64,000 nucleotides of DNA from Mobula hypostoma. Lineage: Eukaryota. Position 1 is the first letter of the stretch; each line of letters opens with the position of its first letter. The position numbers and the translations under genes were made by a program. The stretch spans positions 25,668,001 to 25,732,000 of the forward strand of contig NC_086129.1 in assembly GCF_963921235.1 (NCBI RefSeq), read 5' to 3'. The notes beneath the pieces were generated by a model. That model was not told the origin of the DNA, searched no databases, and saw nothing but the letters and a program-made list of their open reading frames with translations. This document shows positions 1-7,702 of this stretch, in pieces.

Positions 1-829
1 AACCCAGGCCCCATGGAATATTTCCTGCCAGATTGTTTCTGCATTTATCAAGATTCAATGATAGTGACATCACAGTGCAGGTTTAACATTGATAATAATG
101 TGTTTATTTTCAATGGTTTGACTTGCTACATTTTCTCTCTTTTTATTTGGACGCTATGATGCAACCTCATTCCACACTCTTGTACTACAAGAGGAACACC
201 CAAATAGCAGTAGTCAGATACTGAAATCCTGATTGCTTTAAATTGTTTTGGCCTAGATGATATCACACCAATTGCAACACCCTACTGAGCTCAGGAAAGA
301 TCATGGATTGAACCTGCTCTGTATGATCCAATTATACACTGAACAATATGTCCATAGACAGGCTTACTTGATACTTCTCTGTATTTTGTTGCTAGTTGGT
401 GAACCTTGTCAGGCTATTAGGTGACACAGAATCAACGTGGATTTTCAAACCAGTGGGTTTCAGTCTTAAATGATTTTGCAATCATTTATTTCCTATATAA
501 AATTGCAAATTTACTCAATTCAATTTAACATTTATTGTGGCCATGTGACCATAAGGCATAGAAGCAGAAATATGCCATACCATCATGGCTGATTTATTAT
601 CACACTAGGATTTGAACTCAAGATCCCCGAGTTGGTTTTCTAATTAACTACTCACTACCACACCCTCAGTAACAACAATTAATTTGGCAGCAGTGAACAT
701 AGCTCTTGGTTAAACAGAAATCAACCTCCACCTTCACCGTTACTCAAACAGGAAACAGAATTTCCGAAACCTATTCCTTTACAAGGGCAACTGGTTAAAG
801 GATATATTATCACTTCTGAGCCCTACTAA

Positions 830-985
830 ATTGGAAATTGGCATTGTTCTTTCCTAGTTATTGGGTCAAAATCTTGGAAACCTTCCCTAGTACTTCAGAT
901 TACGGCAAAAGTGCGCAGTGGCTCACCATCATCTTAAAGCAGCTGGAAATTGACAATAAATGCTAGCCTTGCCAGTGACACCCAA
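830..985 (+). mobile_element. Old LINE 3' end fragment
   Basis: gggtcaaaatcttggaa...caataaatgctagccttgccagtgacaccc. Related tail at about 37075-37125 and, inverted, at about 35125-35185. Confidence 0.5.
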
Positions 986-1444
986 GTCTCCCAAATTAAT
1001 TAAATAAATAACCCTTTTCAAATTGTGAACTACACTAAATAATAAATTTGAACATCTACCTTCATTATTTAGAATATCTATTTTTAGTCTTTACTTTTCT
1101 TTCCAGCAACATTAAAGTAGTTGGTTTTCAGCAAGAGAGTGCTAATCATCCAGATATGAGAAATCACTGAAGCATCCCTTTATCTGAAATGGTTGCACAT
1201 TTTAGCAGCAAAAGGTTCACTGGTAATTTTGAGTTCTTATTTGAGTGGGTATTGCATTTCACTCTCCATTGAAGATAAAATGAAAGAGATAAACTTACAG
1301 GCATTGTCCATGGCACAAGTGTGACATTTCAGATGGAATGGATTCAACGAGTAATTGCAACCGATTCATTTAGGCATTCAACCTCCTGCCAGGCACCAGT
1401 AAAACTTTTCCATTTACAGTTACAATCACCCTTGTGTTACTCAC

Positions 1445-1468
1445 CAGTAAGTAATTTCCACATCCTTT
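1445..1468 (-). CDS. Candidate 24-nt alternative microexon in the Ig3-Ig4 linker (ERMWKLLT)
   Basis: ttttttcactgttctag|AAAGGATGTGGAAATTACTTACTG|gtgagtaac. Length divisible by 3, phase 1-1, no stop codon. No transcript evidence. Confidence 0.55.
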
Positions 1469-1744
1469 CTAGAACAGTGAAAAAATTCAACATTATGGGA
1501 CACAGTGAGTGGTACGTAATCATGATAATTATTGGTAAATGTTCACCATTTAAATTACAAACAAACAAAAGAATTAGAAAAGAATGATTGTTTTAAAGCT
1601 AATTTCAATGAAAATCAACACTAAGCAAGTTGGAAAATTGTGTCATTGGCTTACTCCTCACCACTATATGGTCATAATCAGAACTTCTGACTCCCATGAA
1701 AGGTGATTCCATCAGTCGTCCTTGGTATCTTGCCCAATTCATGG

Positions 1745-2035
1745 TCATAGAATTTTATAGTACAGAAATGGGCCATTTGGCCTTCTAAGTCTGTGCTGAC
1801 CATCAGCCACTCATACACACGAAATCTACATTAATCCCATTTTTCTTTATTCCCCCAAATTCTCCCACTCACCTACACACAAGGGACAATTTATCATGGC
1901 CAATTAAACTTGACATAAGTTGGAGTACCAACTGGAAACCCACTTGATCTATATAAAGAGAATCAGAGGTCAGGACTGAACCTGGATCACTGGAGATATG
2001 AGGCAGAAGATCTATAGGCTGTACACTGGGCTGCC
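1745..2035 (-). mobile_element. Degenerate tRNA-derived (V-SINE/HE1-like) SINE
   Basis: Layout similar to copies at 26150-26480 and 32345-32810, with a CR1-like tail. Confidence 0.5.
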
Positions 2036-2550
2036 CACTTGGGAGTTTTTTTTTCATATTTTCTTTGCTTGGAACTTATTGAATCTGCAGAAAAATCTGT
2101 TTCGCACCAGAGCCACCCTGCCTTATAGCTTCTACAATTCTCCACTCTCCAATTCTGGCATACAAAGAAAAGCAAGTTCTCTCCATAACGCATGCTGCTT
2201 CATGACCCTGGAATGCAGCCTGATTGCTCCTGCAATGAGTGTTTGTAGGAGTAGTCAGTCCTAATCCCAACCCTAATTTTGCAAGGATAGAGTTAGATTT
2301 CATTGTGATACCCTATCAGGGATTAAACTGGCAACTGTCACTCACTGTAAAGACTCTCAAATCAATAGTCAAAAATCCATCAGTCATTAATCAACACATT
2401 CAAGTCTAATCTACACGTTTCCTTGCCTTGCATCAGTGATAAGATGCTGCCACAAAGGTTGAATGATGGAATCACCCCTCCGTGCAACAGAAGTATTTCA
2501 CTAAATATATACATATTTTCAGTTCAGAAAAATCATCCAGAGATCCTTAC

Positions 2551-2678
2551 CATGCACAGTCAGAGTGCCCGAGAATTCAACGTTACCCACAGTGTTTTCT
2601 GCAATACAGGTGTATGTCCCCTCATCCTCGCTGCTAACCTGTACCAGCCGCAAGCTGTTGTCAGGCTGAATCTCAAAT
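2551..2678 (-). CDS. ROBO3: ROBO3-like coding exon, second half of Ig3, 128 bp
   Basis: Not in the ORF track; reads (R)[42 protein letters not shown] with the DxGxYxC Ig motif. Acceptor tctctttcag, donor gtaagg, phase 2 to 1. Confidence 0.93.
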
Positions 2679-3112
2679 CTGAAAGAGACAGAAAAACTTT
2701 TTTAGTTCATTGTATACCCTGGTGCAAAATAAGAGTTACTCACACTGTTCACTGAATTGAAGTACTCACTTCAAGTGACCTTGCCTTGTGTGATATTGTA
2801 AAAAGGCCATTCGTGAATCAGCAACCGACATTACATCTCTCCTGCATTTTATTTCTATTGAGCTAATGCAGATATAAAATAGACTACTGGTCTACTGTTA
2901 CTCATTTTGCATCATCACACAAAGCCCAAGTGACTCATACGCTTATTTCTTTGTTTTCTCCCTCTTCTGTTTTGAATGTGCTCATTCATAGAGTCATAGA
3001 TGTAAACAGCACACAGACCCTTCAGCCCAACCCATCCATGCTGACCAATTGCCTACCAGAGCTAGTCTCATCTGCCTGCATATGTCCTATATCCCTCTAA
3101 TCCAGGGATAAA

Positions 3113-3455
3113 AACATAGAAAACCTATGGCACAATACAGGCCCTTCGGCCCACAAAGCTTTCCCGAACATGTCCTCAACTGAGAAATTACCTAGGGTTA
3201 CCCATAGCCCTTTATTTTTCTGACCACCACCTGTCCAGGAGTCTCTTAAAATACCCGATTGTATCCACCTCCACCACCATCGCCGGCAACCCATTCCACG
3301 CACTCACCACTCTCTGAGTAAAAAAACTTATCCCTGACATCCCCTCTGTACCTACTTCCAAGCACCTTAAAACTATGCCCTCTCATGCTAGCCATTTCAG
3401 CCCTGGGGAAAAAGCCTCTGACTATCCACACAATCAATGCCTCTCATCATCTTAT
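3113..3455 (-). mobile_element. CR1 LINE 3' fragment
   Basis: Minus-strand FFPRAEMASMRGHSFKVLGSRYRGDVRDKFF (CR1 ORF2 C-terminus), then 3' UTR and tttctatg tail. Confidence 0.85.
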
Positions 3456-4076
3456 TGTGCTATGGACCCCTATCATTAACCGAGGGGTCCATGAACCCCA
3501 GGTTGGAAACCTCTGTTCTAATCCTTTCCTATCCATGTACCTGTCCCAACTGTGTTTTAACTGTTGTAATTACGCCCACTTCAAATGTTCCCTCAGTCAG
3601 AGTAAAGATTCTCAGTCCCACCCATCAGGTCCAGGTATCCATCTCATACATTGGATATCAACTGTTATGCCTGAAAGAAGGAACACATAAAAGCAGATCC
3701 TGAACCAAACGTCCCATTGGGTGGCTGGAATAAGATAATTGGTCCTGCTTTTACTTCCATCTCTCTGGGGTGCTGAGGAACTAATGCCACTTCGTTTACT
3801 GAGAAAGGTCAACCCAAACGGGAGGGGACCACCCTATGGATAAATATACTAAGATCATAAAACAATGTTTTTTGGTTCACTTCCCAAGAACCAGTGTACC
3901 TTAAGACCTCTTCTGATGAGTGCATTAAATTCTGAGATAGTTCTTAACGTATTTCATTCCAATGAAGGACATGGCACTAAACTGCAATGGGGCAAGCTGG
4001 TTAGTTGGATCTTCACTGGCATCTTCTTAGCTGAACAGAAAAATACATTGAAGACTCTAATACTTTAACTACATAC

Positions 4077-4215
4077 CTTTCCCGTGGCAGCTCGCCCTCC
4101 TCCTTGCGCCAGCGGGTGGTCGGCACGGGGTCGCCATGCACCTCGCAATGAAAGTCCACGGTGTCAGCTGCCAGAACCACCTGGTTTACAGGACGCTTGA
4201 TGAAGGTTGGCCGTT
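4077..4215 (-). CDS. ROBO3: ROBO3-like coding exon, first half of Ig3, 139 bp
   Basis: (E)[45 protein letters not shown](R). Acceptor cctgcag, donor gtatgt, phase 1 to 2. [16 protein letters not shown] and [10 protein letters not shown] fit ROBO3 better than ROBO2 (INQVVLEE, CQVQGDP, KKDDADLP). Confidence 0.93.
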
Positions 4216-4689
4216 CTGCAGGATTATGACGGGGCAAGGTGACGAGACCGCAATGAAAATTACAACCAGATAAGTCACTTCCCAGGCAATGCACTGCCAT
4301 TTGGAGGAAGTTTGCTCATGCATTTTTGGCAACTCTTTTGTGAGGCTTTTGCAGGGTAGAGTAAGCTGGTAGATGCTCCCTCATACTGCCAATTTCTGAC
4401 CATCACTCTGCTCTTTACATTCATAGAATCACAGAATTATAAAAATCCATGGCACAGAAAGGGGCCATTCAGCCCCGTTTCATAGCAGCTGTCTAACCTG
4501 ATCCCAATTCATAGCCCTTGGCGACAACTCTTGCAACTTATAGCGCATCAGGTTCTAAACTGGACATGTATTGGATGTCCTGAGCTTTTCTGGCAATATT
4601 ATCCTTTCTGACTGAGTAAACCAGACCCCATTAACACCTCTCCAGGCTTCGTCCTAATAAATGAAATCTCTATCCTCTGTGCACGTTTG

Positions 4690-6915: not shown

Positions 6916-7036
6916 CAAAAACAACCAGGTCTGCCGGCTCACTGTCCCTTTCACCCACCATGTTGGTGGCCACACAGACGTACATGCCAGCATCGGACTT
7001 CCTCGTGTTTGAAATCATCAGCTTTCCCCCTCGGAT
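6916..7036 (-). CDS. ROBO3: ROBO3-like coding exon, second half of Ig2, 121 bp
   Basis: Not in the ORF track; read manually as [40 protein letters not shown](E). Acceptor ttcttttctag, donor gtaagt, phase 0 to 1, in frame with both neighbours. Confidence 0.93.
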
Positions 7037-7544: not shown

Positions 7545-7702
7545 TGTGATCCGCTCCTCTTTGTCGTTGATGCGCACATTGTTTTTCTTCCAGGAGATGG
7601 TTGGCTCTGGATGCCCTCTTGGTGGGAGGCACTCCATCACAGCGGGTTCCCCTGCCGCCACCACAACATCGCTGGGCGCTTGGCGGAAATCGTCACGTAG
7701 GA
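7545..7702 (-). CDS. ROBO3: Roundabout receptor (ROBO3-like) coding exon, first half of Ig2, 158 bp
   Basis: Translates (V)[52 protein letters not shown]. Acceptor ...ctccctag, donor gtgagt, phase 1 in and phase 0 out. Typical ROBO Ig2 sequence; the paralog call rests mainly on the Ig3 exons. Confidence 0.93.

Follow-up and report, generated by a model that had tools for sequence, protein, structure and literature searches.

The closest described system is microexon 6b (e6b) of Robo1 and Robo2 (Johnson, Junge and Chen 2019, eLife 8:e46042; PMC6687390), which codes for sequence of the linker between the third and fourth Ig domains (Ig3 and Ig4) and measures 9 bp in Robo1 and 12 bp in Robo2. 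Its conservation extends across mammals and chicken, and NOVA represses it via YCAY sites on either side, in introns with 7 to 10 YCAY repeats as candidate NOVA sites; the Ig3-Ig4 intron spans 25 kb in the genomic sequence used in that study (PMC6687390). The original prediction from which the present analysis started was thus right in placing microexons of ROBO1 and ROBO2 in this linker. It had known of no equivalent in mammalian ROBO3, and on that point the literature speaks against it: the plasmid-construction methods of a 2024 paper describe a human ROBO3 ectodomain cDNA from brain as containing microexon 6b (e6b+) (PMC11848016). If this wording is correct, mammalian ROBO3 has an e6b equivalent; the wording may also be a carry-over from a ROBO2 construct. 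Beyond this one methods sentence (PMC11848016), we found nothing in the literature on a ROBO3 microexon, and the supplements of zebrafish microexon papers list robo1 and not robo3.

The window that we analyzed, i.e., the whole stretch of 64,000 nt, comes from Mobula hypostoma (GCF_963921235.1, contig NC_086129.1, forward-strand positions 25,668,001 to 25,732,000). Its minus strand carries four exons of a ROBO-type gene, with canonical splice sites and consistent phases throughout, followed by part of the intron of interest.

7545..7702, minus strand: ROBO3 exon, first half of Ig2, 158 nt, ending in ...KEERIT
6916..7036, minus strand: ROBO3 exon, second half of Ig2, 121 nt, leaving one G
4077..4215, minus strand: ROBO3 exon, first half of Ig3, 139 nt, ERPTFIKRP...GELPRE+AG
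2551..2678, minus strand: ROBO3 exon, second half of Ig3, 128 nt, FEIQPDNSL...GTLTVH+G, donor CATG/gtaagg, phase 1 out
1..1444, minus strand: Ig3-Ig4 intron, remaining part up to the window edge, no Ig4 exon

The last Ig3 exon (2678-2551) has the 3' end ...ACTGTGCATG/gtaagg, from which one G is carried over. Between the 24-nt candidate discussed below and coordinate 1, we found neither an Ig4 exon nor an Ig-like reading frame, and the Ig3-Ig4 intron leaves the window at this edge. At the other side, the minus strand of positions 7703-64000 (i.e., upstream of the Ig2 exon) contained no ROBO-type Ig1 exon, and the intron before the Ig2 exon would therefore be larger than 56 kb. When scanned in full against Rfam at gathering thresholds, the window gave no match to any family.

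Both Ig3 exons aligned as single full-length stretches to human ROBO2 (6iaa) and ROBO1 (5o5g), with the second-half exon matching residues 260-300 of ROBO2 chain 6iaa and residues 245-285 of ROBO1 chain 5o5g; the PDB constructs of ROBO1/2 are e6b-minus. By a hand count on the printed alignments, the first Ig3 exon was approximately 60% identical to each of the human ROBO1 and ROBO2 PDB chains. A ROBO3-like contig from another fish (L001, described below) was 84% identical to the window over the first Ig3 exon and 69% identical over the second, and it showed the same distance pattern toward ROBO1/2 as the window gene. The terminus of Ig3 reads ...VH in the window, in L001 and in two further fragments (L003 and L004), ...VQ in ROBO1 and ...VR in ROBO2. 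Since the host gene is closer to the fish ROBO3 type than to ROBO1/2 and has the ...VH terminus, and since ROBO4 lacks Ig3, it is, as judged by sequence comparison, a ROBO3 ortholog. Three other searches were less informative: a representative protein search with the 42-aa Ig3 exon yielded mostly giant multi-Ig proteins and not a single ROBO, a look-up in the ESM Atlas gave generic I-set clusters only, and a homologous-protein search with the frame that contains the second Ig3 exon had no matches. The intron that follows this exon is the one that holds exon 6b in Robo1/2, as is clear from the RT-PCR primers of the earlier study, which anneal to the second exon of Ig3 and the first exon of Ig4 (PMC6687390).

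In this intron, which the original prediction had thus correctly equated with that of ROBO1/2 exon 6b, the minus strand reads ttttttcactgttctag/AAAGGATGTGGAAATTACTTACTG/gtgagt at 1468-1445 (with extended flanks, ...gaattttttcactgttctag/AAAGGATGTGGAAATTACTTACTG/gtgagtaa), and the gap to the last Ig3 exon (2678-2551) is 1,082 nt. The predicted arrangement of 24 nt between a pyrimidine tract plus TAG and a G/GTGAGT donor, 1.08 kb past the last Ig3 exon, is therefore present as described.

1469..1598, minus strand: putative 3' splice region with TAG acceptor, interrupted pyrimidine tract TTTTTTCACTGTTCT, possible CTCAC branch site and 130-nt AG-free zone
1445..1468, minus strand: candidate 24-nt cassette exon AAAGGATGTGGAAATTACTTACTG, phase 1-1, ERMWKLLT, leaving one G
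1436..1444, minus strand: putative 5' splice site CTG/GTGAGTAAC, donor score 6.7

Translated with the carried-over G, the element gives E R M W K L L T, without a stop and with one G left, which would keep Ig4 in frame; the phase (1-1), the stop-free frame and the peptide that had been proposed all held. Its putative junctions would run from ...ACTGTGCATG to AAAGGATGTGG... and from ...TTACTTACTG to the first Ig4 exon. Positions 1-2550 had no repeats elsewhere in the window (the scope of this comparison being the window and not the whole genome), so the claim of nonrepetitive DNA is borne out at that scale and, with no second copy of this segment, an origin of the candidate from a repeat or transposon was rejected within the window. 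Recursive splicing was likewise rejected, because the acceptor is not directly followed by GT. Four RNA runs from one organism (X1 to X4) contained 11 to 31% of the words of window positions 1300-4400. Elsewhere in the visible intron, we noted a 9-nt in-frame pair, tgcttttctttgtatgccag/AATTGGAGA/gtggagaa (ELE; 2146-2154, minus strand), with a good acceptor, UGC motifs, a GCAUG approximately 40 nt upstream and a weak GTGGAG donor, which is probably due to chance.

The strength of the splice signals was weighed against chance expectation. Under a simple criterion (10 or more pyrimidines out of 15, AG, 3 to 51 nt, GTRAGT), the gene strand of the window contained 25 AG-to-GT pairs, six of which both were a multiple of three nucleotides long (3n) and were open in phase 1. 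When scored with approximate splice-site matrices, the candidate had an acceptor value of 3.7 and a donor value of 6.7 (sum, 10.3), and the totals of the four real ROBO3 exons ranged from 7.3 to 14.3. Among the GTs of the strand, its donor ranked in the top 0.16%, and it exceeded the donors of all four real ROBO3 exons in the window. Pairs scoring as high as the candidate numbered four on the gene strand and two on the other strand; among in-frame, microexon-like AG-to-GT pairs in the visible intron, the candidate was the best, with the runner-up at 3.9. A 3-Mb order-3 Markov simulation, used as background, yielded 3.2 pairs of this strength per 64 kb, or 0.66 per 64 kb when the pair also had to be 3n and open, which corresponds to 0.026 per 2.55 kb, the length of the visible intron. 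Such elements are therefore common per window and uncommon for the visible intron, and anyone reading a whole window will often meet a strong, 3n, open pair, given the 0.66 expected per 64 kb. In short, the splice signal of the candidate is good, not decisive.

The surroundings of the candidate were examined for marks of regulated splicing. The 130 nt before the acceptor contain no AG, which ranks it among the top 0.14% of AGs on the gene strand; of the 223 AGs on both strands that look like good acceptors, only 2 follow an AG-free zone of at least 130 nt. Long AG-free zones are enriched upstream of alternative exons. YCAY occurs four times in the 50 nt that precede the candidate (top 0.9% of windows) and five times in 100 nt (top 4%); the 100 nt downstream contain none. 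The 60 nt upstream are free of UGC. A single GCATG occurs in the visible intron, at position 2195 (approximately 700 nt upstream of the candidate), and this part of the intron lacks pyrimidine runs of 10 nt or more as well as any motif cluster comparable to that of the fish exon candidate described below.

With these features, the element could be read as a real 24-nt cassette exon of ROBO3, alternatively spliced without a change of frame, that arose within the cartilaginous fishes or a subgroup of them, adding ERMWKLLT to the Ig3-Ig4 hinge independently of an e6b-type exon and possibly repressed by NOVA via the upstream YCAY sites. Speaking for this are a combined splice score that is the best among the in-frame pairs of the visible intron and comparable with those of real exons, a donor that beats all four of theirs, the mere 0.026 in-frame decoys expected in the visible 2.55 kb, and an open, 3n frame that passes on the same G to the codon that follows and so keeps Ig4 in frame. 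The 130-nt AG-free zone and the four YCAY sites in the 50 nt upstream lend it mild support. The favorable extras, however, were chosen post hoc, from about six features tried after the sequence had been seen; UGC, UGCAUG and downstream YCAY are missing; the peptide is hydrophobic for a linker; and a high score is itself weak evidence, since the probable real microexon of fish ROBO3 (see below) scores low. On balance, we consider a cassette exon of this kind unlikely. By the same measure, it is doubtful that a 24-nt cassette would supplement or replace the 12-nt e6b-type exon of other fish ROBO3 genes.

Use of the acceptor alone would have a different outcome. Past an unused donor, the frame continues directly after the 24 nt as GGT GAG TAA, i.e., ...T G E and a stop (...ERMWKLLTGE followed by the stop codon), and read-through would thus yield either a secreted protein cut short after Ig1-3 or a transcript that is unstable. 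The proximity of this stop fits such a scheme, but the donor is very strong, making read-through improbable once the acceptor is used, and we deem this outcome very unlikely.

Evidence on where a ROBO3 microexon might reside came from other fish. A homologous search with the frame holding the first Ig3 exon returned three Logan fragments (L001 to L003), and a metagenome scan added a fourth (L004). Both L001 (Logan SRR31175846) and L004 (MDSQ01027804.1) are of the ROBO3 type; they are related to each other and probably derived from bony fishes, as judged only from their TG-rich introns and a similarity to the window that is limited to the exons. L002 represents a related cartilaginous fish, with introns approximately 73% identical to those of the window, in a contig that stops 2 kb short of the candidate position. 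The Ig3-Ig4 introns of L001 and L004 can be aligned, with one block at 93% identity and 40 to 67% elsewhere. The block includes ccat[a/c]acag/TCGGCCCATCCA/gt[a/g]agtatt, a short exon candidate with its splice sites, which was examined with its flanks (L001:3540-3710).

L001:3640-3651 and L004:3261-3272: 12-nt exon candidate TCGGCCCATCCA (VGPS), phase 1-1, with exon, AG and GTRAGT identical in both

This candidate lies 1,356 nt (L001) and 1,768 nt (L004) from the Ig3 exon. In both species, the 100 nt upstream contain 11 to 15 YCAY motifs, against about 2 in the background; UGC comes after a long pyrimidine tract ahead of the exon, and UGCAUG is found at +27. We looked upon the element as probably a real e6b-type neural microexon of fish ROBO3, and it was used as a positive control for the appearance of a conserved microexon at this site. 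Its score with the same matrices that were applied to the 24-nt candidate is only 3.6, and a high matrix score hence does not mark real microexons in the Ig3-Ig4 intron. Further blocks with 85 to 93% identity between the L001 and L004 introns were seen at L001:2864-2929, 2963-3016 and 3789-3834, the first of which overlaps a weak 27-nt in-frame AG-to-GT pair (EPQLIIPLE).

In the window, neither a pattern search allowing three mismatches nor a profile search found a match to the fish 12-nt exon block; these fish are too distant for intron alignment. This result bears on the possibility that the 24-nt element is the direct ortholog of ROBO1/2 exon 6b, inherited from an ancestral ROBO and expanded to 24 nt. 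Intron and phase are indeed those of e6b, and ROBO3 probably carries an e6b-type exon in other vertebrates. The conserved exon candidate in fish, however, is 12 nt long and has neither sequence nor flanking motifs in common with the 24-nt element, the known e6b exons measure 9 and 12 bp, and nothing resembling the fish block was retrieved from the window, which makes direct orthology highly improbable. The claim that the microexon switch may be ancestral to all three paralogs accordingly fared in two ways: the idea as such gained support from the 12-nt fish exon candidate and from the human cDNA (PMC11848016), and its second part, that the 24-nt element is the retained exon, was weakened by the lack of similarity and the absence of the expected marks. 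Two other searches concerned the candidate itself: a homologous search with the 88-aa opposite-strand frame that runs over it gave no matches, and a degenerate pattern for AG+ERMWKLLT+GTRAGT had 0 matches in metagenome contigs, a result that is uninformative.

We consider it likely that the 24-nt element is an intronic pseudo-exon, unused in mature mRNA or used at noise level only. A TAG that resembles an acceptor and a GTGAGT that resembles a strong donor would here happen to lie 24 nt apart, in frame, within the ROBO3 Ig3-Ig4 intron, and the sequence between them would be left out of the mature mRNA or included only at noise level. Nonuse is suggested by the base rates, by the missing control motifs of neural microexons and by the lack of any relation to the conserved fish exon candidate. 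If M. hypostoma has a ROBO3 counterpart of e6b, it would more likely be located further down the intron, beyond the window edge. A large Ig3-Ig4 intron is plausible, since the intron before the Ig2 exon exceeds 56 kb and the Robo1/2 intron spans 25 kb. Since the fish 12-nt block is unmatched in the window, the boost that comes from a paralogous position belongs to that exon, which probably lies beyond the window edge. Without this boost, the candidate keeps only the general prior for a new microexon, set against a nontrivial decoy rate.

A microexon between Ig3 and Ig4 of ROBO3 is thus plausible, but the 24-nt element is probably not that exon. Should the element be spliced after all, cartilaginous-fish ROBO3 could change the hinge before Ig4 by alternative splicing; the e6b principle of ROBO1/2 would then extend to the third paralog, with an unusually long insert, and M. 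hypostoma ROBO3 would have its own splice-controlled change of hinge geometry. The more useful result is an indirect one, namely, the conserved 12-nt exon candidate in the ROBO3 genes of two other fish. Together with the human e6b+ cDNA, it suggests that an Ig3-Ig4 microexon is common to ROBO1, ROBO2 and ROBO3, and, as it carries NOVA-, RBFOX- and SRRM4-type motifs, it provides a concrete search model for the rest of the intron.

How the 24-nt candidate relates to known systems can be put as follows. Like e6b of Robo1/2, it is situated in the Ig3-Ig4 intron, preserves the frame, would lengthen the linker and has some YCAY upstream. Unlike e6b, it comprises 24 nt (8 residues) rather than 9 or 12 bp, placing it outside a range of 9 to 12 nt (3 to 4 residues); within 100 nt on each side, it has five YCAY upstream and none downstream, whereas e6b has 7 to 10 in both flanking introns; its peptide would put a hydrophobic M-W-K-L-L core into an interdomain linker, which sets it apart from the known e6b inserts; and it belongs to ROBO3, while e6b belongs to Robo1/2 and is conserved in mammals and chicken. 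With the 12-nt VGPS exon candidate of fish, it shares the gene (ROBO3), the Ig3-Ig4 intron, phase 1-1 and a similar distance from Ig3 (1.08 kb versus 1.36 and 1.77 kb); that exon differs in its length of 12 nt, its 11 to 15 upstream YCAY motifs, its UGC and its UGCAUG at +27, and no sequence is common to the two. In contrast to neural microexons of the SRRM4/RBFOX type, the candidate has no UGC between pyrimidine tract and AG and no downstream UGCAUG. Intronic pseudo-exons, finally, are similarly made up of good acceptor-like and donor-like sites at exon-like spacing inside an intron; compared with most of these, the candidate is stronger (scores this high are reached by approximately three pairs per 64 kb), and the AG-free zone before it is unusually long.
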